NCBI RefSeq assembly: GCF_044704955.1
Contig: NC_091978.1
Location: 319,920,001 to 319,984,000 of the forward strand
Direction: 5' to 3'
DNA length: 64,000 bases
DNA from: Pristiophorus japonicus
Lineage: Eukaryota
Shown: piece by piece, positions 5,165 to 64,000 of the stretch
How the letters are laid out: the number at the start of each line of letters is the position of its first letter
Position numbering within the stretch: the first letter of the stretch is position 1
The notes under the pieces: model-generated
Seen by the model: only the letters and a program-made list of their open reading frames with translations
Told to the model about the DNA's origin: nothing
Database searches by the model: none
Translations under genes and position numbers: made by a program

Positions 5165-6127
5165 ATTATTTATTCTGGGCATGGCCAGCATTTATTGCCC
5201 ATCCCTAATTGCTCTTGAGAAGGTGGTGGTGTGCCACCGCCTTGAACCGCTGCAGTCCGTGCGGTGAAGATACTCCTATAGGGAGTTCCAGGACTTTGAC
5301 CCAGCAACGATGAAGGAGTGGCGATGTATATCCAAGTCATGGTGGTGTGTAACTTGGAGGAGAACCTGCAGATGAAGGTGTTCCCATGCATCTGCTGCCC
5401 TTGTCCTTCTAGGTAGTAGAGGTAGCGGATTTGGGAGGTGCTGCTGAAGAAGCCAAGGCGAATTGCTGCAGTGCATTTGTAGATGGTACACACTGCAGCC
5501 ACGGTGCGCCGGTGGTGGAGGGAGTGAATTTTTAAGGTGGTGGATGGGGTGCCAACCAAGCGGGCTGTTTTGTCCTCGATGGTGTTGAGCTTCTTGAGTG
5601 TTGTTGGAACTGCAATCATCCAGGCAAGTGGAGAGTATTCCATTACACTCCTGACTTGTGCCTTGTAGATGATGGAAAAGCTTTGGGCAGTCAGGAGGTG
5701 AGATACTCGCTGCAGAATATCCAGCCTCTGACCTGCTCTTGTTGCCACATTATTTATGTGGCTGGTCCAGTTAAGTTTCTGATTATTGGTGACCCCCACC
5801 GCCCCCACCCGGATGTTGATGCTGGGGGATTCAGTGATGGTCGTGCCATTGAATTTCATACAGCGGTGGTTAGACTCTCGCTTGTTGGAGATAGTCATTG
5901 CTTGGCACTTGTGTGGCGTGAATGTAACTTGCCACTTATCAGCTCAAGCCTGAATGTCATCCAGGTCTTGTTGCATGCTGGAATGGACTGCTTCATTTTC
6001 TGAGCAGTTATGAATGGAACTGAACACTCTGCAATCATCAGCGAATATCCCCACTTCTAACCTTATGATGGAGGAAATGTCATTGATGAAGCAGCTAAAG
6101 ATGGTTGGTCCGAGGGCACTGCCCTAA
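5165..6127 (-). mobile_element. 5'-truncated 3' fragment of the same LINE family as 7547-10697
   Basis: ORF 5170..5898(-) QKLNWTSHINNVATRAGQRL...IYKAQVRSVMEYSPLAW matches 10060-10330(+). Same tail (gcaattagggatgggcaataaatgctggcc). Confidence 0.9.
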
Positions 6128-6928
6128 GTATCTCTTGCTGGTTCCACTCATCGCTGCACTTGTGTGCTAAACCATTCAGCACCTTTAAGTTGTTTAAAGT
6201 TCCTGAGCCTGGAGGACTAGAAAGGGTTGCTCTCTGATTGGCAGATCTGACAGAATTTAAAAGAGCTGCCGCATTCTATCACGCCCCAGTGCTGCTTTAT
6301 TTTTTTATCTACACATCATCATTCATAGCATAGAATTTAATAGTGTCAAAATGATCATCATTCATCTATGCAGTACTCTGAAGGTCCTTAATGTCTTCAA
6401 CAAATCTAATTCTGCTCATGTCAGAATTTAAGACTTACTGAGAAGGCACTCCTGATAAACCACTGCACTGTCAGTACAGAGAGAAAAGATAAGTTAGTGT
6501 TTTTGTCAAGCAGTTTTTACTGTCCTGCCATGAAAATGATCTGTGAACAGATTGTTTTTTTTTAATGAGCAGGAGGGCAAAACTCCAAACGTACAAAGCT
6601 ATTTTCAAAAGTAACCATGTGCTATAAATTGGGTATAACATTGGTCAGTCATCATGTGACGCAGAATAACTTTAAGGGGCTTGTAATATTGTGTATGGAC
6701 GCTTGCATTATTACGTTATCATGTGTGCACCACTGGCTGCATCAGAGCCAAACCCAATATTGTCCTCGCACACCACCCAGATCTATGCACTTCTCACAAG
6801 AGTTAATACATAAATCTTAGGAGCAGGAATCCTGGTGCTAAGGCAATTCGAGTGCTCCAACCGCCACTAAGCTAAGATCGGTAAATTCAGCACTGGCTAG
6901 GAACTAAAGCTAGGTTCTTCCGATTCTG

Positions 6929-7098: not shown

Positions 7099-7546
7099 TT
7101 CCGATTCTGTATGACTTAGCTCTCAATGTCACAACCAGTTGAGTAACTGGAAGATTCTGATGTAATTTTCTAAAGGTGAAAAGGATCATGTGCTAAGTAA
7201 TCACTTACATATGCATGATCTTAATTCACAAAGTGCTTGTGCTTGTGGATATTTTTTCTCTTCTGCATATTTCCTTATTTTCCTATATTTTATAAACATG
7301 CAAATAAGATAGGGTATATGCACGCTTATTATAGATTTCATTCTATTTGCATAATGTGTAGTCTCTAGACCAGTGTTTTACACTTGAGCCTCACCATTTT
7401 TGCTGGGTGGCAAATGGAAAAAAACATTATAATTAGATCCTGTTGTTTACTACTCCCTTTTTGCTCTTCTAATATCCCTTTTCATCTTCCTACTAAAGAT
7501 AACAAGGAATATAGAAAGTGTAGTACCAGCTCTCCAACACGTATGC

Positions 7547-10500
7547 ACTAATGATCCGGAGACATGAGTTCAAATCCTGGGGAATTTAAATTCTGTTAAG
7601 TAAATACATCTGAAATAAAAAGCTAGTATCAATAATGGTAACCATGAAACTACTGGATTATCATAAAAACCCAGCTGGTTCACTAATGTCCTTTAGGGAA
7701 GGTAAATTTGCTGTCCTTACCTGGTCTGGCCTATATGTGACTCCAGACCCACAGCAATGTGGTTCACTCTTAACTGCCTTCTGAAATGGCCTAGTCAAAC
7801 TGCTACAAAGAAGTATACTAAGAATAACACAAGATGGATCACCCGGCATTAACCTCGGCACCGGACACGATAAAGGCTCACCGAGCCCACTCCACTCTGA
7901 AAAGTCCTCCTCACTAACATTGTGCCAAAATGTGGGAGAGCCATCACACAGTCTAGTCAAGCAACAGCCTGACATAGTCATACTCACAGAATCATACCTT
8001 TCAGCCAACTTCCCAGACTCCTCCAATACCATCCCTGGGTATGTCCTGTCCCACCGGCAGGACAGAGCCACCAGAGGTGGTGGCACCGTGGTATACAATC
8101 AGGAGGGAATGGCCCTAGGAGTCCTCAACATTAAGTTCAAACCCCATGAAGTCTCATGGCATCAGGAGAAATATGGGCAAGGAAACCTTCTGCTGATTAC
8201 CACCTACACCCTTCCTCAGCTGATGAATCAGTACTCCTCCATGTTGAAAACCACTTGGAAGAAGTACTGAGGGTAGCAAGGGTACAGAACATACACTGGG
8301 TGGGGGACTTCAATGTCCATCACCAAGAATGGCTCAGTAGTACCACTATTGACCAAGCTGGCCGAGTCCTGAACGACATAGCTGCCAGACTGGGCCTGCG
8401 GCAGGTGGTGAAAGAACCAACACAAGGGAAAAACCTATTTGACCCCTTCCTCACCAGTCTACCTGTCGCAGATGCACCTGTCCATGACCATATTGGCAGG
8501 ACTGACAAGCGCACAGTCCTTGTGGAGATAAAGTCCCGTCTTCACACTGAGGACACTGCCCATCATGATGTGCGGCACTACCACCGTGTTAAGTGGGATA
8601 GATTCAGAACAGAACTAGCAGCTCAAAAGTGGGCTTCCGTGAGGCGCTGTGGGCCAACAGCAGCAGCAGAATTGTATTCTACCACAATCTGTAACCTCGT
8701 AGTATGGCATATCCCTCATTCTACCACTATCATCAAGTCAGGGGACCAACCCTGGTTCAATAAGGATTACAGAAGTGTATGCCAGGAACAGCACCAGGCG
8801 TACCAAAAAATAAAGTGCCAACACCGTGAAACTACATCACTGGACTAAGTACCTGCTAAACAGCGAAAACAGCATGCTATAGACAGAGCTAAGCAATCCC
8901 ACAATCAACGAATCAGATCAAAGCTCTGCAGTCCTGCCACCTCCAATCGTGAATGATGGTGGACAATTAAACAACTAACGGGAGGAGGGGGCTCCATGAA
9001 TTTGCGAGTGCAAAAGACTGGGCTAAAACATTCACAACCATCTTCAGCCAGAAGTGCCAAGTGGGTGATCCATATCGGCTTCCTCCTGAGGTCCCCATCG
9101 TCACAGAAGCCAGATTTCAGCCAATTGAATTCACTCCATGTGAGATCAAGAAACGGCTTCGTGCACAAGATACAGCAAAGGTTATGGGCTCCTACAACAT
9201 CCCGGCTGTCGTGCTGAAGACGTGCTCCAGAACTAGCCAAGCCTCGATCCAAGCTGTTCAAGTACAGCTACAACACTGGCATCTACCTAACAAAGTGGAA
9301 AATTGCACTGGTATGTCCTGTCCACAAATCCAGTTTGGCTAATTACCACCCCATCAGTCTCCTCTCAATCATCAGCAAGGTGAAGTAAGGTGTCGCCGAC
9401 AGTGCTATCAAGCGGCACTTACGCACCAATAACTTGCTCATCAATGCTCAGTTTGGATTTCGCCATGACCACTCGGCTCCAGACCTCATTACAGCCTTGG
9501 TCCAAACACGGACAGAAGAGCTTAATACCAGAGGTGAAGTGAGAGTGACTGCCTTTGACATCAAGGCAGCATTTGACCGAGTGTGTCTTCAAAGAACTCT
9601 AGTAAAATTGTAGTCTATGGAAATCAGGGGGAATACTTTCCACTGGCTGGAGTCATTCCTACCACAAAGGAAGATAGTTGTGGTTGTTGGGTACCAATCA
9701 TCTCAGCCCCAGGTCACTGCTGCAGGAGCTCCTCAGGGCCATGTCCTAGGTCCAACCATCTTCAGCTGCTTCATCCATGACCTTCTCTCCATCATAAGAT
9801 CAGAAGTATGGTTGCTCGCTGATGATTGCACAGCATTCAGTTCCATTTGCAACTCCTCGAATAATGAGCAGTCCTTGTCCACATGCAGAAAGACCTGGAC
9901 GACATTCAGGCTTGGGCTGACAAGTGGCAAGTAACATTCGTGCCTCAGGTGTCAGGCAATGACTATATCCAACAAGTGAGAGTCTAACCACCTCCCCTTG
10001 AGATTTAACGGCATTACCATCCCTGAATGCCCTCATCATCAACATCCTGGGGTTCACCATTGACCAAAAACTTAACTGGACCAGTCAGATAAATACTGTG
10101 GCTACAAGAACGGGTCAGAGGCCGGGTATCCTGTGGTAAGTCACTCTCCTTCTGACTCCTCAAAGCCTTTCCACCATCTACAAGGCACAAATCAGGAGTG
10201 TGATGGAATACTCTCCACTTGCCTGGCTGAGTGCAGCTCCAAAAACACTCAAGAAGCTCAACACCATCCAGTACAAAGCAGCCTGCTTGATTGGCAACCC
10301 ATCCACCATCTTAAACATTCACTCCCTCCACCCATCATGGTTGTAGTGTGTACCATCTATAAGATTCACCGCAGCAACTTGCCAAGTCTTCTTCGACAGC
10401 ACCTCCCCAAACTCGTGACCTCTACTGTCTAGAAGGACAAGGGCAGCAGGCGCATGAGGACACTATCACCTCCAAGTCACACACCATCCTGACTTGGAAA

Positions 10501-10697
10501 TGTATCGCCGTTCCTTCATCATCACTGGGTCAAAATCCTGGAACTCCCTCCCTAACAGCATTATGGAAGTACCTTCACCACATGGAATGCAGCAGTTCAA
10601 GGAAGTGGCTCACCACCACCTTCTCAAGGACAATTAGGGATGGGCAATAAATGCTGACCTTGTCAGTGACGCCCACATCCCATGAACAAATAAAAAA
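7547..10697 (+). mobile_element. Near full-length single-ORF LINE (CR1 group, possibly Zenon-like; APE + RT, no ORF1) with tRNA-like 5' head; pseudogenised copy
   Basis: APE motifs (KVLLTN at ~7901, QPDIVILTESYL, RGGG, WVGDFNVHH) and RT motifs (DIKAAFD, PQGHVLGP, LADD) across frameshifted ORFs 7920-9934. B-box GAGTTCAAATCC at 7566-7577. 3' end cacatcccatgaacaaataaaaaa. Confidence 0.9.
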
Positions 10698-22427: not shown

Positions 22428-23565
22428 ATAGAAACATAGAAACATAGACATTAAAACATAGAAAATAGGTGCAGGAGTAGGCCATTCGGCCCTTCGAGCC
22501 TGCACCGCCATTCAATGAGTTCATGGCTGAACATGCAACTTCAGGACCCCATTCCTGCTTTCTTGCCATATCCCTTGATCCCCCTAGTAGTAAGGACTAC
22601 ATCTACCTCCTGTTTGAATATATTTAGTGAATTGGCCTCAACAACTTTCTGTGGTAGGGAATTCCACAGGTTCACCACTCTCTGGGTGAAGAAGTTTGTC
22701 CTCATCTCAGTCCTAAATGGCTTTCCCCTTATCCTTAGACTGTGACCCCTGGTTCTGGACTTCCCCAACATTGGGAACATTCTTCCTGCATCCAACCTGT
22801 CTAAACCCGTCAGAATTTAAAATGTTTCTATAAGATCTCTTATTCTTCTGAACTCCAGAGAATACAAGCCCAGTTGATCCAGTCTTTCTTGATATGTCAG
22901 TCCCGCCATCCCGGGAATCAGTCTGGTGAACCTTCGCTGCACTCCCTCAATAGCAAGAATGTCTTTCCTCAAAGGAGACCAAAACTGTACACAATACTCC
23001 AGGTGTGGCCTCACCAAGGCCCTGTACAACTGTAGCAGCACCTCCCTGCCCCTGTACTCAAATCCCTTCGCTATGAAGGCCAACATGCCACTTGCTTTCT
23101 TAACCGCCTGCTGTACCTGCATGCAAACCTTCAATGACTGATGTACCATGACACCCAGGTCTCATTCCACCTCCCCTTTTCCTAATCTGTCACTATTCAG
23201 ATAATAGTCTGTCTCTCTCTGTTTTTACCACCAAAGTGGATAACCTCACATTTATCCACATTATAGTTCATCTGCCATGCATTTGCCCACTCACCTAACC
23301 TATCCAAATCACTTTGCAGTCTCATAGCATCCTCCACGCAGCTCACACTGCCACCCAACTTCGTGTCATCCGCAAATTTGGAGATAGTACATTTAATCCC
23401 CTCGTCTAAATCATTAATGTACAATGTAAACAGCTGGGACCCCAGCACAGAACCTTGCGGTACCCCACTAGTCACTGCCTGCCATTCTGAAAAGTACCCA
23501 TTTACTCCTACTCTTTGTTTCCTGTCTGCCAACCAGTTCTCAATCCATGTCAGCACACTACGCAC
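22428..23565 (-). mobile_element. Young 5'-truncated CR1 (RT C-terminal half + 3' UTR)
   Basis: ORFs 23197..23595, 22817..23149 and 22541..22795 (-): SGVPQGSVLG, KFADDTK, LVRPHLEYCVQFW. (TAGAAACA)n tail at 22428-22465. Confidence 0.95.
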
Positions 23566-23569
23566 TACC

Positions 23570-24082
23570 CTATACTTGTAATTGAGGTAGTGCAATGAAG
23601 ATTCACCAGACTGATTCCTGGGATGGGGGGATTGTCCTCTGAGGAGAGATTGAGTAGACTAGGCCTATATTCTCTAGAGTTTAGAAGAATGAGAGGTGAT
23701 CTAATTGAAACATACAACATTTTTACAGGACTTGACAGGCTAGATGCAGGGAGGATGTTTCCCCTGGCTGGAGAGTCTAGAACCAGGGGTCACAGTCTCA
23801 GAATAAGGGGTGAGCCATTTAGGACTGAGATGAGGAGAAATTTCTTCACTCAGAGGGTGGTGAATCTTTGGAATTCTCTACCCCAGAAGGCTGTGGAGGC
23901 TCAGTCATTGAATATATTCAAGACAGAGAGCAATAGATTTTGGGATATTAAGGGAATCAAGGGATATGGGGATAGTGCAGGAAAGTGGAGTTGAGGTAGA
24001 AGATCAGCCATGATTTCATTGAATGGCAGAGCAGGCTCGAGGGGCTGAGTTGCCTACTCCTGCTCCTATTTCTTATGTTCTT
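23570..24082 (+). mobile_element. CR1 3' fragment (its first ~18 bp sit at 22410-22427)
   Basis: ORF 23623..23994 LGLYSLEFRRMRGDLIETY...WNSLPQ; tail cctatttcttatgttctt. Confidence 0.9.
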
Positions 24083-26640: not shown

Positions 26641-28873
26641 CTACCCAGTGAAATTAATCAATGAAGAAAAAAAGTGACACAAATCACCCATTTAGCTACC
26701 GACATAAAGGAAAACTGTAATTGTTATTAGAATGTTACCAACCATCGGAGAGACGAGAAGAGAACCTCCATGTGCCTGTATTTCGTGTCGCAGTCTACTA
26801 TCAGTCCATTGTCTGTTAGTTGAACCAGCTGCCCTGTTCTGAAAGAAGCACAGAACATGAAAAAATCAACTGATTGCATGGAAGCTGTGTATTAATTTTA
26901 TTGATCTGTGCAGTGATTAACATTGACTCTTTGTACCACAAGAAAACAGGACTGTTCAAAGCTTGTAGTACTCAGTGGCATGTGTATTAAAGAACGGAGA
27001 AGCAGTGGCCATTTGTTGCCTGCTTAATCTGACCTGAAAAGTAAGCATTGAATGGTACCCTTGACAGGTGACGTTTCGTGTGTAGAATGTGCAGCAGGCT
27101 TCCATATGCTTGTACAAATGTCCTCTTATTTAGCTTAATCTGAGTGGGATGTGGGAAACGGTCCAAGTCAGAGATTACTCAGTGTGTAGCAGGGAAAGCC
27201 CATAAGTCTGCACAGCTGTGACTTAATATTCTGCACACCATTTCTTGGGACTCGGTATCAAATATGTTTGTTGTCATAGCACTTCCGTTTTTAAAGTGAA
27301 ATATAAAGTGTTTTTATCCTACAGAAGAAGGACTTTACTGTATGGGGCTTTAGGGAATGTTCTGAATGCATTTCCTGTGCAAAATAACAAAATTAGAATT
27401 CTTTAAATTTCTCTGTTCTTCGAAGCTGAGTGCCCAGCCGTTCCACCAGCTGTGGGCTCCCTAAGCTTTGTTGTCCTGTCACAGCTCAATGGAGTATTTA
27501 AAGAGGACTTTGGAAATTTGCCCTGACTGTTGCTTCACATGTCAGTTACCAACACTGACATTTTCACACTGACAAATACATACCATAAAGAACACTTTCA
27601 TACTAACACACAGGTATCTATATAGAGTATTTCACACTGATAGCTACTTGCTATTGAGTGCTGGTTAGGTATAACATTTCATTAATTCCCAGTTTAAGTT
27701 TCAGCTAGTTTGATCCTGATTAAATGTACCAAATGAGGGGGCCCACAATGCAGTGCTGACTCTGTTTTGTGAATTATACATAAGATCCTTAATTTCTCTC
27801 AACCCCGACCCACCTACTCCTTGCCTCAATTTCTGAAAAATCTCTAATTAGTTGGCTGTATGATAACAGTGTAACATTCTAGGTGAAATATCACAAACAA
27901 CATCCAAAGTGACCACAGAGCTGGGTGGTGATGACACATACTGGGCCATGAGGAGGAAAAAGAGATGAAGAGGGGATTTGCAAAAAAAATATTGGCAACA
28001 GGAGTGGACCAATTTAGCCCTTTGAGCTTGCTCAACCATTCCACTAAATCAGGCCTCATCTGTACCTCAACTCCATTTACCAGCCTCAGCTCCATATCCC
28101 TTAATACCCATACCAAACAAAAATCTATTGCTCTCGGTCTTCAAAGCTCAATTGTCCCAGCATCCACCGCTTGTTGTGAGGGCGAGCATTCTAAATTTCT
28201 ATGACCCTTTGTGTGAACAATTGCTTCCTGATTTACTTCCTGAATGGCCTAGCTCTAATTTTATGATTAGGACCCCTCATTCCTAATTCCCCCATCAGAG
28301 GAAATAGAATCCTTTTAATATTTTAAACTCATTGATCAGATCACCCATCAAACTTCTATACTTACCGGTGCACAAAACTGAAAACAGTACTCTAAATGGA
28401 CGCTGACCAAGACTCTATACAACTGAAGCATAATTTCCTCCCGTTTGTAATCCAGCCCCCTTGAGATAAAGGTCAGCATTCCATTCGCTTTTTGATTGCT
28501 ATTTGTACCTGTCTACTCGCTTTGAATGATTTGTGTACTTGGACTCACAAATCTCTCTGCTCCTCTACAGTTCCTACTATTTAGAAAATACTTCAGTTTA
28601 TCTTTCTTCGTACCAAAATGGATGATCTCACACTTGCCGACATTAAACTCCATCTGCCAGAGTTTTGCCCATTCACTTAATCTGTCTATGTCCCTTTGCA
28701 ACTTCCTGTTTCCATATGTTTTACTTACTGTCCCTCCTAATTTAGTGTCATCTGCAAACTTGGATATGCAACACTCTCCTTCATCCAAGTCATTAATAAA
28801 TATGGTGAAAAGCCTAGGGATCATCATTTGTCACATCCTGTCAATCTGACTACATGCCCTTTATTCCACTCTC

Positions 28874-30469: not shown

Positions 30470-31950
30470 TTGAATCATAGTAATTTACAGCGTGGATGTA
30501 GGACATTCAGCCTAAGGTGTCTGTGCCAGCCGAAATAGAGCTATCCAGCCTAATCCCACTTTCCAGCTCTTGGTCCGTAGCCTTGCAGGTTACAGCACTT
30601 CAAATGCATATCCAAGTACTTTTTAAGTGCAATGAGGGTTTCTGCCTCAACCATCCTTTCGGGCCGCAAGTTCCAGACCCATACCACCCTCTGGGCGAAT
30701 AAAGTTCTCCTCAACTCCCCTCTAATCCTTCAACCATTAATTTAAATCTATGTCTCTTGGTTATTGACCGCTCTGCTAGGGGAAATAGGTCCTTCCTATC
30801 CACTCTATCAAGCCTCTCATAATTTTATATACCTCAGCATCCTCTGTTCCAAAGAAAACAACCTCAGCCTATCCAAACTTTCCTCATAGCTAAAATTCTC
30901 CAGTGTTGGCACCATCCTTGTAAATCTCCTCTGTACCCTCTCTAGTGCAATCACATCTTTCCTGTAATGTGGTAACCAGAACTGTACGCAGTACTCTAGC
31001 TGTGGCCTAACTAGTGTTTTATACATTTCTAACATAACGTCCCTGGGCTTTTATTCTATGCCTCAGCTAATAAAGGAAAGCATCCCCTACGCCTTCTTAA
31101 CTACCTTATCTACCTGTCCTGCTAACTACAGGGATCTGTGGACATGCACTCCAAGGTCCCTCTGTTCCTCTACAGTTTTCAGTCTCCTACCATTTATTGT
31201 GTATTCTCTTGCTTTGTTAGCCCTCCCCCAAATGCATTACCTCGTACTTCTCTGGAGTGAATTCCATTTGACACTATTCTGCCCACCTAACCAGTCCATT
31301 GATATCTTCCTGCGATCTATAGCTTTCTTCCTCACTATTAACCACACATCCAATGTTTGTATTATCTGAAAACTTCTTAATCATGCCCCCTACATTGAGT
31401 CTCAATCATTGATATATACCACAAAAAGCAAGGGACCTAGTACTGAGCCCTGCAGAACCCCACTGGAAACAGCCTTTTAGTCAGAAAAACACCCGTCGAT
31501 CATTACCCTTTGCTTCCTGCCACTGAGCCAATTTTGGATCTAACTTACCATTTTCCCTTGGGTCTCATGGCATTTTACTTTTCTGGCCAGTCTGCCATGT
31601 GGGACCTTGCTAAAATCCATACATCAAATGCGCTACCCTCATCGACACTCCTTGTTACCTCCTCAAAAAAAATTCATTCAAGTTAGTCGGACACGAGCTT
31701 CCTTTAAAAATTCCATGCTGACTGCTCTTGATTAATCCGTGATTTTCTAAATGATGATTAGTATTATCCCTCAGAATTTTTTTCAATAATTTGCCCACCA
31801 CCGAGGTTAGTTTGACTGGTCTGTAAGGTCTATTTCTTTCTCCCTTTTTAAACAACAGTACAATGTTAGCAATCCTCCAGTCCTACTGCACCACACCTGT
31901 AGCCAGAGAGGATTGGAAAATAATGGTCAGAGCCTCCGTTATTTCTTTGC
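30470..31950 (-). mobile_element. CR1 3' half (different subfamily), decayed
   Basis: ORF 30817..31035(-) YKTLVRPQLEYCVQFW; ORF 31655..31855(-) YRPVKLTSVVGK...SQHG. Confidence 0.85.
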
Positions 31951-32127
31951 TTGCTTGGTCCAGTGGTAAGGGGGTCGAAGACGACTGGAGATCAGACTCC
32001 GCTGTATGGGCCTAGTACATACAAGCACACAAACTCCTACTGTCCTCATTTCTCCTTCCTGCAGGACCTCTCTCCCTGGGTTGCATAGGATGCAGTGGCG
32101 GTCTCACAAACTCACTGGCCCATGCTG

Positions 32128-43765: not shown

Positions 43766-46254
43766 CATGGCAGGGGGATGGGAACCTAGGTAGGGAGACA
43801 GAGGGAAATAAAATGGAGGCAGAAGCAAAACATAGAAAGGAGAATAGTAAAAGTGGAGGGCAGAGAAACCCAAGGCAAAAAACAAAAAGGGCCACATTAC
43901 AGCCAAATTCTAACGGGGCAAAGTGTGTTAAAAAGACAAGCCTGAAGGCTCTGTGCCTCAATGCGAGGAGTATTCGGAATAAGGTGGACGAATTAACAGC
44001 GCAGACAGCAGTTAACGGATATGATGTAATTGGCATCACGGAAACATGGCTCCAGGGTGATCAAGGCTGGGAACTCAACATCCAGGGGTATTCAACATTT
44101 AGGAAGGATAGGCAGAGAGGAAAAGGAGGCGGGGTGGCGTTGCTGGTTAAAAAGGAAATTAATGCTATAGTAAGGAGGGACATTAGCCTGGATGATGTGG
44201 AATCGGTATGGGTGGAGCTGCGGAATACCAAAGGGCAGAAAACGCTAGTGGGCGTTGTGTACAGACCACCAAACAGTAGTAATGAGGATGGGGACAGCAT
44301 CAAACAAGAAATAAGGGATATGTGCAATAAAGGTACAGCAGTTATCATGGGCGACTTTAATCTACATATTGATTGGGCTAACCAAACTGGTAGCAATGCG
44401 ATGGAGGAGGATTTTCTGGAGTGTATTAGGGATGGTTTTCTCGACCAATATATTGAGGAACCAACTACAGAGCTGGCCATCCTAGATTGGGTGATGTGTA
44501 ATGAGAAAGGACTAATTAGCAATCTTGTTGTGCGAGGCCCCTTGGGGAAGAGTGACCATAATATCGTAGAATTCTTTATTAAGATGGAGAGTGACACAGT
44601 TAATTCGGAAACTCGGGTCCTGAACTTAAGGAAAGGTAACTTCGACAGTATGAGGCGTGAATTGACTAGAATAGACTGGCAAAGCTTTGACGGTGGATAA
44701 GCAATGGCAAACATTTAAAGATCACATGGATGAACTTCAGCAATTGTACATCCCTGTCTGGAGTAAAAATAAAACGGAAAAGGTGGCTCAACCGTGGCTA
44801 ACAAGGGAAATTAAGGATAGTGTTAAAACCAAGGAAGAGGCATATAAATTGGCTAAAAAAAGTAACAAATCTGAGGACTGGGAGAAATTTAGAATTCAAC
44901 AAAGGAGAGCTAAGGGTTTAATTAAGAGGGGGAAAATAGAGTACGAGAGAAAGCTTGCAGGGAACATAAAAACTGATTGCAAAAGCTTCTATAAATATGT
45001 GAAGAAAAAAAGATTAGTGAAGACAAATGTAGGTCCCTTGCTGTCGGATTCAGATGAATTTATAATGGGGAACAAAGAAATGGCAGACCAGTTGAACAAA
45101 TACTTCGGTTCTGTCTTCACAAAGGAAGACACAAATAACCTTCCGAAAGTACTAAGGGACAGTCGGTCTAGTGAGAAGGAGGAACTGAAGGATATCCTTA
45201 TTAGGCAGGAAATTGTGTTAGGGAAATTGATGGAATTGAAGGCCGATAAATCCCTGGGGCCTGATAGTCTGCATCCCAGAGTACTTAAGGAAGTGGCCCT
45301 AGAAATAGTGGATGCATTGGTGATTATTTTCCAAAAGTCTATCGACTCTGGATCAGTTCCTATGGACTAGAGGGTAGCTAATGTAACACCACTTTGTAAA
45401 AAAGGAGGAAGTGAGAAAACGGGTAATTATAGACCGGTTAGCCTGACATCAGTCGTGGGGAAAATGTTGGAATCAATTATTAAGGATGAAATAGCAGCGC
45501 ATTTGGAAAGTAGTGACAGGATCTGTCCAAGTCAGCATGGATTTATGAAAGGGAAATCATGCTTGACGAATCTTCTGGAATTTTTTGAGGATGTAACTAG
45601 CAGTGTGGACAAGGGAGAACCAGTGGATGTGGTGTATTTGGACTTTCAAAAGGCTTTTGACAAGGTCCCGCACAAGAGATTGGTGTGCAAAATCAAAGTG
45701 CATGGTATTGAGGGTGATGTACTGACGTGGATAGAGAACTGGTTGGCAGACAGGAAGCAGAGAGTCGGGATAAACCGGTCCTTTTCAGAATGGCAGGCAG
45801 TGACTAGTGGAGTGCTGCAGGGCTCAATGCTGGGACCCCAGCTCTTTACAATATACATTAACGATTTGGATGAAGGAATTGAGTGTAATATCTCCAAGTT
45901 TGCAGATGACACTAAACTGGGTGGCGGTGTGAGCTGTGAGGAGGACGTTAAAAGGCTGCAGGGTGATTTGGACAGGTTAGGTGAGTGGGCAAATGCATGG
46001 CAGATGCAGTATAATATGGATAAATGTGAAGTTATCCATTTTGGGGGCAAAAACACGAAGGTAGAATATTATCTGAATGGCCTCCTGCACCTATTTTTAT
46101 GTTTCCTGTTCAAAAGACGTCCATTAACCATTGCTCTTTGTTTTTGACTACGCAACAACACTGACTACACCTTGAAAGTAAGTCATTGGCTGTGAAACAC
46201 TTTAGGACATCCTGGGCTGTAAAAGGCATGAAATAGATGCAAGTTCTTTCTTCT

Positions 46255-48073: not shown

Positions 48074-48399
48074 TCATTTATATACTATTTAACATTAAAT
48101 GTTACAAATTGTATTCGTTACAGGTTGCAGCGAAACACAACTAACTGTTGTAATGTGCAATGCAAAAATGTTGTTCATATAGCTCAGATGAAAGTGGCCC
48201 TTAAGCTTGGCTGATTTATTAGCTGCATATGAATGATTTTATAGACAAATTGGTCTGTGAGCGAATTTGTGCTCTTATTCATTTGTAAGTGATCTCTTGT
48301 GTAGGCTTTGTTCACACGTTTCCATGTGAGGAACCTTGTGCGCACATTAACATTTTAGAGACCACAGATGCTTGTGCATTTGCTGGCATGTACGGTATA

Positions 48400-48750
48400 G
48401 GGTACGATAGCACAGTGGTTATGTTACTGGACTAATAATCCAGAGGCCTGGAGTAATGATCCAGTGAGTTTAAATCCCACTACAGCAGCTGGGTAATTTA
48501 AAATTCTATTAATTAAATAAATCTGGAATAAAATAGTGATTTTTAAAAAAACCTACTGGATTGTTGTAAAACCCCATCTGGTTCACTAATGTCTTTTAGG
48601 GAAGGAAATCTGCCGTCCCTACCCAGTCTGGCCTATATGTGACTCCAGACCCACAGCAATATGGTTAACTCTGAAATGGCCTAGCAAGGGCAATCAGGGT
48701 TGGGCAATAAATGCCGGTCTTGCCAGCGACGCCCACATCCCATGACCGAA
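48400..48750 (+). mobile_element. tRNA-headed SINE made of the 5' head and 3' tail of the 7547-10697 LINE
   Basis: A-box TAGCACAGTGG (48408-48418), B-box-like GAGTTTAAATCCC (~48466-48478). Body matches 7547-7795; tail gggcaataaatgccggtcttgccagcgacgcccacatcccatga matches 10628-10686. Confidence 0.9.
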
Positions 48751-49230
48751 TTTTGTAAAAATGTGAGTGGTTTCAGTTAAACATTAAATATGTTAGCATC
48801 CTCATGAATATCTGAACAGTCCTGAGCTTTTAATCTTTTTGTTTCCTCCCATGCTTTTGTTATATTTCTAGCACTCTGTCTTTTTTGCTTTTCACTCTTT
48901 TTCGCTTTCTTTTTTTGACATCTGCATACATTTCAATTGCTTTTTGTTTTACTTCTCTTCCCCGATATCATCAACTTGGCTATCAATGTTGGTACAATTA
49001 ATTGCAGGGCCATATTGCAGTGCCAAGACTTTGCATTAGAATACAGTAAAGAAGCATGCAGTAAAAAAATTTGGGAGGATAAAGGACATTTTTTAAAAAA
49101 ATGCATTTTCAAATCTGATTTATTTTTTTAAATGAACACACTGATGTTGACTTCACAAACTAATATTAGTCACAGCTGGCAGAGGCCAGCTAACCTTTTC
49201 CTACAGCTGTTTCAGTTGTGCGCTGTTCAT

Positions 49231-52214: not shown

Positions 52215-55200
52215 TGACAGCCCACTTCTACCTCCTTCCCAAGATCCACAAACAGGACTGCCCTGGTAGACCCATCATTTCAGCATGTTCTTGCCCCACA
52301 GAACTTATTTCTTCCTATCTCAACTCTATTTTTTCTCCCCTTGTCCAGTCTCTTCCCACCTACATTTGCTACTCCTCCGACGCCTTAATAGTTTCCAGTT
52401 TCCCGGCCCCAACCATCTCCTTTTCACCATGGACATCCAATCCCTCGACACTTCCATCCTCCACCAGGATGGCCTGAGGGCGCTCTGCTGCTTCCTCGAG
52501 CAGAGGCCCAACCAGTCCTCATCCACCATCACCCTCCTCTGCCAGGCTGAACTTGTTTTCATATTGAACAACTTCTCCTTAAACTCCACTCACTTTTTCC
52601 AAATTAAAGTTGCTGTGGGAACCCACATTGGTCCGAGCTATGCCTGCCTTTTCATGAGATGTGTGGAACATTCTTTGTTCCAGTCCCACTCGGGTCCTCT
52701 CCCTCACCTCTTTTTCCAGGGCATCAAACAGGAAATTAGGGGTGCATGCAATAAAGGTGCAGCAATTATAATGGGTGACTTTAATATGCACATAGATTGG
52801 GCTAACCAAACTGGAAGCAATACAGTGGAGGAGGATTTCCTGGAGTGCATAAGGGATGGTTTTCTAGACCAATATGTCGAGGAACCAACTAGGGGGGAGG
52901 CCATCTTAGACTGGGTGTTGTGTAATGAGAGAGGATTAATTAGCAATCTCATTGTGCGAGGCCCCTTGGGGAAGAGTGACCATAATATGGTGGAATTCTG
53001 CATTAGGATGGAGAATGAAACAGTTAATTCAGAGACCATGGTCCAGAACTTAAAGAAGGGTAACTTTGAAGGTATGAGGCGTGAATTGGCTAGGATAGAT
53101 TGGCGAATGATACTTAAGGGGTTGACAGTGGATGGGCAAAGGCAGACATGGATGAACTACAACAATCGTACAATCCTGTCTGGTGTAAAAATAAAAAAGG
53201 GAAGGTGGCTCAACCGTGGCTATCAAGCGAAATTAGGGATAGTATTAAAGCCAAGGAATTGGCATACAAATTGGCCAGAAATAGCAGCGAACCCGGGGAC
53301 TGGGAGAAATTTAGAACTCAGCAGAGGAGGACAAAGGGTTTGATTAGGGCAGGGAAAATGGAGTACGAGAAGAAGCTTGCAGGGAATATTAAGGCAGATT
53401 GCAAAAGTTTCTATAGATATGTAAAGAGAAAAAGGTTAGTAAAGACAAACATAGATCCCCTGCAGTTAGAATCAGGGGAAGTCATAACGGGGAACAAAGA
53501 AATGGCAGACCAATTGAACAAGTACTTTGGTTCGGTATTCACTAAGGAGGACACAAACAACCTTCCGGATATAAAAGGGGTCAGAGGGTCTAGTAAGGAG
53601 GAGGAACTGAGGGAAATCTTTATTAGTCGGGAAATTGTGTTGGGGAAATTGATGGGATTGAAGGCCGATTAAATCCCCAGGGCCTGATGGACTGCATCCC
53701 AGAGTACTTAAGGAGGTGGCCTTGGAAATAGTGGATGCATTGACAGTCATTTTCCAACATTCCATTGACTCTGGATCAGTTCCTATGGAGTGGAGGGTAG
53801 CCAATGTCACCCCACTTTTTAAAAAAACGAGGGAGAGAGAAAACAGGGAATTATAGACCGGTCAGCCTGACCTCAGCAGTGGGTAAAATGATGGAATCAA
53901 TTATTAAGGATGTCATAGCAGCGCATTTGGAAAAAGGTGACATATAGGTCCAAGTCAGCATGGATTTGTGAAAGGGAAATCATGCTTGACAAATCTTCTA
54001 GAATTTTTTGAGGATGTTTCCAGTAAAGTGGACAAAGGAGAACCAGTTGATGTGGTATATTTGGACTTTCAGAAGGCTTTCGACAAGGTCCCACACAAGA
54101 GATTAATGTGCAAAGTTAAAGCACATGGGATTGGGGGTAGTGTGCTGACGTGGATTGAGAACTGGTTGTCAGACAGGAAGCAAAGAGTAGGAGTAAATGG
54201 GTACTTTTCAGAATGGCAGGCAGTGACTAGTGGGGTACCGCAAGGTTCTGTGCTGGGGCCCCAGCTGTTTACATTGTACATTAATGATTTAGATGAGGGG
54301 ATTAAATGTAGTATCTCCAAATTTGCGGATGACACTAAGTTGGGTGGCAGTGTGAGCTGCGAGGAGGATTCTATGAGGCTGCAGAGTGACTTGGATAGGT
54401 TAGGTGAGTGGGCAAATGCATGGCAGATGAAGTATAATGTGGATAAATGTGAGGTTATCCACTTTGGTGGTAAAAACAGAGAGACAGACTATTATCTGAA
54501 TGGTGACAGATTAGGAAAAGGGGAGGTGCAACGAGACCTGGGTGTCATGGTACATCAGTCATTGAAAGTTGGCATGCAGGTACAGCAGGCGGTTAAGAAA
54601 GCAAATGGCATGTTGGCCTTCATAGCGAGGGGATTTGAGTACAGGGGCAGGGAGGTGTTGCTACGGTTGTACAGGGCCTTGGTGAGGCCACACCTGGAGT
54701 ATTGTGTACAGTTTTGGTTTCCTAACTTGAGGAAGGACATTCTTGCTATTGAGGGAGTGCAGCGAAGGTTCACCAGACTGATTCCCAGGATGGTGGGACT
54801 GACCAATCAAGAAAGACTGGATCAACTGGGCTTGTATTCACTGGAGTTCAGAAGAATGAGAGGGGACCTCATAGAAACGTTTAAAATTCTGACGGGTTTA
54901 GACAGGTTAGATGCAGGAAGAATGTTCCCAATGTTGGGGAAGTCCAGAACCAGGGGTCACAGTCTAAGGATAAGGGGTAAGCCATTTAGGACCGAGATGA
55001 GGAGAAACTTCTTCACCCAGAGAGTGGTGAACCTGTGGAATTCTCTACCACAGAAAGTAGTTGAGGCCAATTCACTAAATATATTCAAAAGGGAGTTAGA
55101 TGAAGTCCTTACTACTCGGGGGATCAAGGGGTATGGCGAGAAAGCAGGAAGGGGGTACTGAAATTGCATGTTCAGCCATGAACTCATTGAATGGCGGTGC

Positions 55201-56629: not shown

Positions 56630-57364
56630 ACCTTCATTCCGGAAATAGTGGGGAGCCAAGGGTCTAGTCAGACTGAGGAACTTAAAGAAATTAGTATTAG
56701 TAAAGAAATAGTACTGGAGAAATGAATGGAAATAAAAGCCAACTAATCCCCTGGATTTGATAAGCGAGAACAAGTGATAGTGGTGTCTTTGGATATTCGA
56801 TAAGGTGCCACACGAGGTTATTACACAAAATTAGGGTTAATTGGATTGAGGGTAATATATTAGCATAGATTGAAGATTGGTTAATGGACAGAATACAGAG
56901 TTGGAACAAACGGGTCATTTTTGGGTTGTCAGGCTGTAACTTGTGGGGTACCACAAGGATCGGTGCTTGGGCCTCAGCTATTTACAAACTATATCAATGA
57001 ATTAGATGAGGGAAATGAGTATAATGTATCCAAGTTTGCTGACGTTACAAAGCTAGGTGGGAAAATAATTTGTGAGGAGGATGCAAAGAGGCTTCAAAGG
57101 GATATGGATAGGTTAAATAAGTGGGCAAGAACATGGCAGATAGAATATAATGTGGAGAAATGTGAAGTTATCCACTTTGGTAGGAAAAATAGAAAAGCAG
57201 AATATTTTTTAAATGGTGAGAGATGAGGAATTGTTGGCATTCAGAGAAACGTGGGTGTCCTTGTACACGAATCACTGAAAGTTAACATGCAGGCACAGCA
57301 AGCAATTAGGAAAGCAAATGGTATGTGAGCCTTTATTACAAAGGGATTGGAGCATAAGAGTAAA
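56630..57364 (+). mobile_element. Decayed CR1 RT fragment
   Basis: ORF 56921..57226 GVPQGSVLGPQLF...SKFADVTKLGG. Confidence 0.85.
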
Positions 57365-63247: not shown

Positions 63248-64000
63248 GCAAATGCATGGCAGATAAAGTATAATGTGGATAAATGTGAGGTTATCCACTT
63301 TGGTGGTAAAAACAGAGAGACAGACTATTATCTGAATGGTGACAGATTAGGAAAAGGGGAGATGCAACAAGACCTGGGTGTCATGGTACATCAGTCATTG
63401 AAGGTTGGCATGCAGGTACAGCAGGCGGTTAAGAAAGCAAATGGCATGTTGGCCTTCATAGCGAGGGGATTTGAGTACAGGGGCAGGGAAGTGTTACTAC
63501 AATTGTTCAGGGCCTTGGTGAGGCCACACCTGGAGTATTGTGTACAGTTTTGGTCTCCTAACTTGAGGAAGGACATTCTTGCTATTGAGGGAGTGCAGCG
63601 AAGGTTCACCAGACTGATTCCCGGGATGGCGGGACTGACATATCAAGAAAGACTGGATCAACTGGGCTTGTATTCACTGGAGTTCAGAAGAATGAGAGGG
63701 GATCTCATAGAAACGTTTAAAATTCTGACGGGTTTAGACAGGTTAGATGCAGGAAGAATGTTCCCAATGTTGGGGAAATCCAGAACCAGGGGTCACAGTC
63801 TAAGGATAAGGGGAAAGCCATTTTAGGACCGAGATGAGGAGAAACTTCTTCACCCAGAGAGTGGTGAACCTGTGGAATTCTCTACCACAGAAAGTTGTTG
63901 AGACCAATTCAGTAAATGTATTCAAAAAGGAGTTAGATGAAGTCCTTACTACTAGGGGGGTCAAGGTATATGGCGAGAAAGCAGGAATGGGGTACTGAAG
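63248..64000 (+). mobile_element. Young 5'-truncated CR1 inserted in Gypsy pol; runs off the window
   Basis: Near-identical to 54412-55163; ORF 63215..63826. Confidence 0.95.

Follow-up and report, generated by a model that had tools for sequence, protein, structure and literature searches.

Can RNA polymerase III (Pol III) transcribe a protein-coding retrotransposon of the long interspersed element (LINE) class? LINEs are normally transcribed by RNA polymerase II (Pol II), and short interspersed elements (SINEs) by Pol III. The question is raised by an element at positions 7547-10697 (+ strand) of a 64-kb stretch of the genome of the shark Pristiophorus japonicus (64,000 nt of contig NC_091978.1; the window in what follows). 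An earlier reading of the letters alone, here called the sequence-only reading, saw in this element a LINE with a tRNA-like head that lacks a first open reading frame (ORF1) and whose sense strand is free of runs of four or more T (T4 runs, the terminator of Pol III), and proposed a family transcribed from a Pol III promoter and coding for protein. The element is indeed one unit with a 5' end of SINE type, without ORF1 and without T4 runs; no A-box was seen on the LINE, and no threshold specific to runs of four emerged. The account that we think probable is a different one, in which an ORF1-less LINE and a SINE that is in effect its ORF-deleted partner exchange 5' ends, the coding RNA of the LINE being made in the conventional way. 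The features on which the argument turns are as follows.

7547-7577, + strand: 3' part of a SINE-type tRNA-like head on the LINE copy, recognised by local alignment to SINE positions 48454-48477 and by a jump in depth; the A-box half is missing.
7578-7821, + strand: leader, or 5' untranslated region (5'UTR), of the LINE; its stretch 7577-7794 makes up the SINE 'body', and gene models run from the leader into the apurinic/apyrimidinic endonuclease (APE) domain.
7822-10640, + strand: single decayed open reading frame (ORF) of ~940 codons (APE, reverse transcriptase (RT) and C-terminal part), recognised by PF14529 and PF00078 matches, tblastn and a frame map.
10625-10697, + strand: 3' tail common to LINE and SINE; 10625-10691 (67 nt) has 85% identity to SINE 48685-48751.
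48396-48752, + strand: partner SINE, made up of tRNA-like head, LINE 5'UTR and LINE tail, recognised by alignments to the LINE and by its A and B boxes.
5180-6138, - strand: second LINE copy, 5'-truncated, with the C-terminal part of the RT and the tail; 79.2% identical to 9722-10662.

The anatomy of the element can be read directly. It is a single 3.15-kb repeat unit with single-copy DNA on either side, and its parts follow one another from 5' to 3' as a tRNA-like head piece of ~30 nt, a leader of 245 nt, one decayed ORF with APE and RT, and a tail with a hairpin and an A-rich end. The read evidence, here and below, consists of assembled Logan contigs at 80% likeness from four runs with at least four species labels; such contigs carry no information on transcript starts, strand or expression. 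Word depth in one of these runs (X1, the probable source sample) rises from ~19 at 7421-7541 to ~98,000 at 7542-7662 and drops again beyond 10697. The LINE family is very abundant across several shark species. Relative to that family the window copy has deletions: contigs have ...ATCCCCATCCTCAATGATGG... following 8996/9001, and past 7794 they have CAAGCCACTCAGTTGTA.... These deletions explain one frameshift and part of a dip in depth at 7784-7904, and the dip is not readable as absence, given the indels of this copy and the divergence of the stretch. No convincing target-site duplication was found around 7547-10697, so that it is contiguity that argues for insertion in a single event. By its sequence features the locus is an old, 5'-truncated and frameshifted insertion of a compact ORF1-less LINE of the CR1 group. 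This agrees with the caveat entered by the sequence-only reading, that the copy had lost its A-box end and its frame.

The ORF, read from the decayed copy as it stands, contains frameshifts and in-frame stops. The APE begins at ~7901 (KVLLTN), where it had first been placed, and pieces of the ORF match PF14529 (APE) and PF00078 (RVT_1) in Pfam. The ORF is collinear by tblastn with LINE proteins of 960-980 aa (P0004 and P0006), from their residue ~37-46 through their end. The start of the frame was located with the help of the whale-shark gene models P0166 and P0168, whose N-termini, 'MKPDG...', lead into '...NIW(G/E)LV(P/L)K(P/L)GE...KQ...', with which the APE begins; the start codon is thereby placed at ~7821, where the window copy has the mutated triplet ata (~7821-7823), and the stop is the tag at 10638-10640. 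Distant full-length relatives, on contigs of 3.6-3.9 kb, have 30-45 residues ahead of the APE, in agreement with that position. Protein searches returned short gene-model fragments only, with no full-length family member above 50% identity, and an alignment of the APE N-terminus, run against metagenome contigs, brought up no relative. The results reported here come from individual copies and contigs.

Only ~275 nt (7547-7821) lie upstream of the inferred ORF start in the truncated copy. There is no ORF1 upstream of that start, the longest ORF in the leader being of 49 aa and without a Pfam hit; the sequence-only reading had likewise found no ORF1 and no room for one. What the leader does contain is the sequence of the SINE: positions 7577-7776 are 80.6% identical to SINE 48489-48678 over 201 aligned columns, and only the stretch 7795-7821 is specific to the LINE relative to the SINE copy in the window. 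The evidence on the ownership of this sequence comes from gene models of the whale shark (Rhincodon typus, EukProt), which stem from other copies of the LINE family. The same leader is joined to the same APE start in the whale-shark models P0153, P0165, P0167 and P0169 and, outside this set, in the chimeric model P0038. For P0165 and P0167 the first codon is the ATG in '...ctgaaATGGCCtag...', at the end of the SINE-shared body, and these two read across the LINE-only part of the leader into the APE; in P0169 and P0153 a translation of the body is fused to that of the APE, and P0038 is built likewise. The leader-ORF junction is therefore present in at least six copies, counting that in the window, and its recurrence in five others means that the 'body' of the SINE is the LINE's own 5'UTR. 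The leader has eight ATG triplets in 7547-7821, three of which are used as starts, in different frames, by the whale-shark models.

The SINE shares the other end of the LINE too. Its head at 48400 is complete, as first noted, and both ends of the SINE at 48396-48752 are common to the LINE. In the LINE tail a hairpin at 10637-10681 (-19.1 kcal/mol, z = -2.7) carries AATAAA in an internal loop and is followed by the A-rich end; its counterpart in the SINE tail, at 48697-48741, has -17.3 kcal/mol. The inner stem is GCTGAC/GTCAGT in the LINE and GCCGGT/GCCAGC in the SINE, so that the sequences differ yet are paired in both. The window copy ends aaataaaaaatat, and in four runs contigs of the family continue past 10686/10697 with stretches of 10-14 A, as expected of a poly(A) tail. 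In the second copy a deletion of ~17 nt within 5165-5225 (- strand) takes out the 3' half of the tail hairpin, the end reading gaataaataatttaaaaaa; because of this deletion a consensus fold of the three tails is uninformative.

The joins at which the SINE omits the coding part of the LINE lead from 7773-7794 to 10605-10642. They exist in several variants in four runs, some of which keep up to 26 extra bases of the leader. The SINE is thus composed of nearly the whole LINE leader, the last 20-35 codons and the 3'UTR, and amounts to a LINE that has lost its ORF and has its head complete.

That head has an A-box TAGCACAGTGG at 48408-48418 and a B-box GAGTTTAAATCC at 48466-48477, with tRNA-like spacing. 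The LINE copy has a B-box-like GAGTTCAAATCC at 7566-7577, so that both the B-box on the LINE and the perfect A-box in the SINE, as originally described, have been located. LINE 7549-7577 and SINE 48454-48477 are identical at 23 of 24 aligned bases with two short gaps, the alignment scoring 32 against a maximum of 23 among 500 shuffles. The head on the LINE begins at about SINE position 57, the B-box being kept and the A-box absent; a complete type-2 promoter (A-box and B-box) was not seen on the one LINE copy in which this was examined (7547-10697). The suspicion that the join might be peculiar to this locus fails for the leader-ORF junction, with its five other gene models; the tRNA-like part was verified on a LINE in the window copy only. 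The A and B boxes are there, and yet the SINE head reaches only 16.2 bits (E = 1.3) with the tRNA model at a permissive threshold, below the gathering score of 29, and neither ARAGORN nor Rfam at gathering level found a tRNA gene in the 64-kb window. The head is tRNA-like by its boxes, not by the covariance model. Residues 1-27 of P0169 were considered as a translated tRNA head, and this idea was dropped as they had no significant match.

The remaining observation behind the Pol III proposal is the count of T runs. The sense strand of 7547-10697 (3,151 nt, 22.4% T) has no T4 run, while runs of four or more number 17 for A, seven for C and six for G; the zero and the 17 are as first counted by eye. 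The five to eight T4 runs then thought to be expected agree with a mononucleotide shuffle (6.2 expected, zero in none of 1000) but not with nulls that are aware of context or codons, for which the expectation falls to 2.1-3.4 and the chance of zero rises to ~0.02-0.13. A dinucleotide shuffle gives 3.1 runs and a chance of zero of 0.034, a second-order estimate 2.1 runs and ~0.13, and a synonymous-codon shuffle in the mapped frames 3.4 +/- 1.6 runs and 0.018. Under the last of these A, C and G runs are at expectation. Runs of three or more T are also scarce, 16 against 23 expected (P = 0.011), and given these 16 the probability that none reaches four is 0.08; with T3 runs low too, no sharp threshold at four is evident. 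The depletion is real, T-specific and modest, on statistics that describe one decayed copy and are post hoc, the hypothesis having been formed first.

Two further comparisons lie within the family itself. The second copy has one T4 run, at 5679; the corresponding site of the first copy (10168) has cctttcc, just as the sequence-only reading had it, and this T4 run is the only one in the overlap of ~940 nt. Among the 40 family-majority variant positions listed, out of 765, there are 13 changes to T, none of which makes a T4 run. Outside the family, the LINE at 43798-46081, used as a control, has seven T4 runs, which matches the earlier count of at least seven in this CR1 element. The fragments of other CR1-group LINE families in the window, this control included, are the following.

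43798-46081, 52639-55131, 56747-57208 and 63248-63823, + strand: other CR1-group LINE fragments, sense strand C-poor.
30847-31984, 22583-23574 and 28384-28818, - strand: other CR1-group LINE fragments, sense strand C-poor.

The sense strands of these seven fragments have 11-15% C, where the target has 27%, and T4 runs occur in them at 1.7-7.9 per kb, near their own expectation. In four other LINE families of the window the T4 runs number 3-8 per kb, close to their own second-order expectation, in a composition that differs strongly from that of the target (15% C versus 27% C).

How might a piece of a SINE head have come to stand at the 5' end of a LINE? The presence of that piece means that the template RNA of this insertion began inside the head or upstream of it. 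The routes that may lead there are a heritable LINE lineage that bears the head, copy-choice over the 250-nt leader, and joining in register to a resident SINE. We think it probable that the LINE without ORF1 and its partner, the ORF-deleted SINE, exchange their 5' ends, the LINE coding RNA being made conventionally. The RNAs of the two share a leader of ~250 nt, so 5' ends can pass between them. The exchange would take place through copy-choice by the reverse transcriptase, or would reflect descent from a LINE lineage that once acquired a head, and the ~30 nt of head on the window copy would be carry-over from such an event. The coding RNA would most likely be a product of Pol II, started in the leader or obtained by read-through, with polyadenylation afterwards, as in other LINEs; the family has the poly(A) tail and AATAAA motifs found in ordinary Pol II LINE mRNAs. 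The A and B boxes of the SINE lead us to infer that its RNA is a Pol III transcript. Both RNAs would presumably be copied by the LINE protein through recognition of the common 3' hairpin and the A tail, by analogy with LINE/SINE pairs of the stringent type (PMC1636434, PMC4176376). That the coding strand is poor in T would on this account come from a codon choice rich in C, with T runs scarce in general, rather than from proven selection against Pol III terminators.

Three observations weigh against this account. The absence of T4 runs, at P ~0.02, contrasts with the 3-8 T4 runs per kb carried by the four other LINE families of the window. A template start in or above the head is not explained by a Pol II start in the leader without additional recombination. 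Finally, with eight ATG triplets ahead of it in the leader, the main ORF would not be easy to reach by cap-dependent scanning.

An alternative is that the window copy is a one-off chimera, formed either by a template switch from LINE to SINE RNA in the leader or by the joining of LINE cDNA in register to a resident SINE, in which case the head says nothing about the family. The leader of ~250 nt common to both, the far greater abundance of the SINE and the verification of the head on a LINE at this locus only would all be natural under this explanation, and template-switch chimeras between LINEs and small RNAs are well known for L1. In such chimeras, of which U6/L1 is an example, a LINE insertion has Pol III-type sequence at its 5' end, as is the case here; unlike the present case, they have a complete small RNA and an abrupt join, whereas the head here is truncated and the join lies inside a stretch common to SINE and LINE (bioRxiv 10.1101/2025.02.02.635956). 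Switching to a SINE, or joining to one, would usually give a complete head, yet the head here starts only at about SINE position 57, and all junctions are free of breaks and filler. It would also be a surprise, were chimeras rare, for the single near-full-length copy sampled to bear a head. We regard a one-off event as unlikely.

Less likely still, in our judgement, is the reading with which the question began. It would have master copies of the LINE with a complete head, transcribed by Pol III from its A and B boxes over their full 3.3 kb, with the ORF kept free of T4 runs, polyadenylation at AAUAAA and translation without a cap by a route other than scanning, the SINE being the ORF-deleted form. 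Much of the anatomy is compatible with it. The head piece is contiguous with leader and ORF within one insertion, the element is compact with a single ORF behind eight upstream ATGs, and the SINE has several distinct deletion joints. The deficit against the synonymous shuffle (zero versus 3.4, P = 0.018) is confined to T runs; the sole T4 run of the two-copy overlap is in the second copy; and the changes to T among the variants listed, none of 13 of which creates a T4 run, point the same way. There is a precedent for one of its steps, as Pol III transcripts of SINEs that bear AATAAA (T+ SINEs) can be polyadenylated (PMC8466645). Against it, the A-box has not been seen on any LINE copy, and the T-run deficit is modest, comes from one decayed copy and does not single out runs of four (conditional P = 0.08). 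The presumed-RNA runs mirror genomic copy number and show no start sites. Among the papers searched, none describes a LINE that Pol III transcribes or that has a tRNA head, and we know of no natural multi-kilobase protein-coding transcript of Pol III. Nor does the missing ORF1, which had been taken as a pointer to Pol III, serve as one, since its loss is general in this group of LINEs: Rex1 and Zenon elements are universally without ORF1 (PMC13343379), as are some L2 LINEs such as ZfL2-2 (PMC3880073).

Independent neighbouring insertions, with a SINE fragment beside or around the LINE, or a faulty assembly join are very improbable in spite of the abundance of SINE copies in the genome. The SINE tail is absent both between body and ORF and past 10697 (the best local score is 17, where the tail scores 124 against itself), which also rules out a LINE nested inside a SINE. 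From the body the sequence runs on into the LINE-only leader with no shift of register, just as it does in the other five gene models, and contigs of run X1 are identical to the window over the left flank and on into the head.

Exchange of 5' ends between the LINE and its ORF-deleted partner can be set beside several known systems. By resemblance, rather than by placement in an RT phylogeny, the LINE family looks Zenon-like. Zenon elements end in a poly(A) tail, alone within the CR1 group, and are found in elasmobranchs, where their consensus sequences are >84% alike (PMC13343379). The family in the window has in common with these elasmobranch LINEs of the CR1 group a single ORF with APE and RT, the lack of ORF1, a poly(A) end, its occurrence in sharks and a strong conservation between species; unlike in that account, which mentions neither, there is here a tRNA-like 5' end on the window copy, and a SINE partner (PMC13343379).

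That the body of a SINE can come from the 5'UTR of a LINE, through 'bipartite' elements with the ORF deleted, is established (Kojima 2018, PMC5786205). The 5' donors in that survey belonged to the RTE and Vingi clades only, and the origin of most SINE bodies was left open (PMC5786205). Bov-tA, CoeSINE4, SINE2_Gav and WALLSI2 are built as the SINE here, with a tRNA head, a body from a LINE 5'UTR and the 3' end of a LINE in an ORF-deleted 'bipartite' arrangement; the differences are that the donor here is of the CR1 group and that the LINE copy here has a tRNA-like piece, whereas theirs have none (PMC5786205). A comparable internal deletion that keeps both LINE ends, the 5' promoter piece included, produced the short elements of trypanosomes, RIME from ingi and NARTc from L1Tc, although in these protozoa the 5' piece is a Pol II promoter with a ribozyme and not a tRNA-like head (PMC1874656, PMC3383444).

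At the 3' end the nearest parallels are UnaL2 with UnaSINE1, and ZfL2-2. These are stringent-type, ORF1-less L2 elements, compact and with a single ORF, which have a 3' hairpin in common with a tRNA-derived SINE (PMC3880073, PMC1636434). The shared hairpin is recognised by the LINE protein (PMC3880073, PMC1636434). Unlike the pair described here, they share the 3' tail alone and end in short repeats rather than in poly(A) (PMC3880073, PMC1636434). In sharks and rays, the SINE HE1 and the LINE HER1 are again a tRNA-derived elasmobranch SINE and a CR1-like LINE with a conserved common 3' tail (Ogiwara 1999, cited from PMC3747384). HE1 is classed as a V-SINE. Compared by description only, HE1/HER1 could be the same pair as that in the window or its sister. 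The SINE body here does not appear to resemble the V domain.

With its very abundant tRNA-headed SINE, whose body is the complete 5'UTR of a LINE of the CR1 group, this pair extends the LINE-5'UTR model beyond RTE and Vingi to another clade, and to sharks. The LINE copy with part of the Pol III head of the SINE shows that 5' ends move between the partners, and such movement could bring a coding LINE under a Pol III promoter. Were full-length transcription by Pol III true after all, it would break the textbook division of LINEs and SINEs between the two polymerases and be a natural example of Pol III producing a long protein-coding RNA.

A practical observation concerns databases. In the public gene models P0038, P0015, P0003 and P0155 host exons (CAND1-like, zinc-finger and PDZ) are fused to pieces of the LINE or the SINE, so that this family contaminates the gene annotations of sharks.

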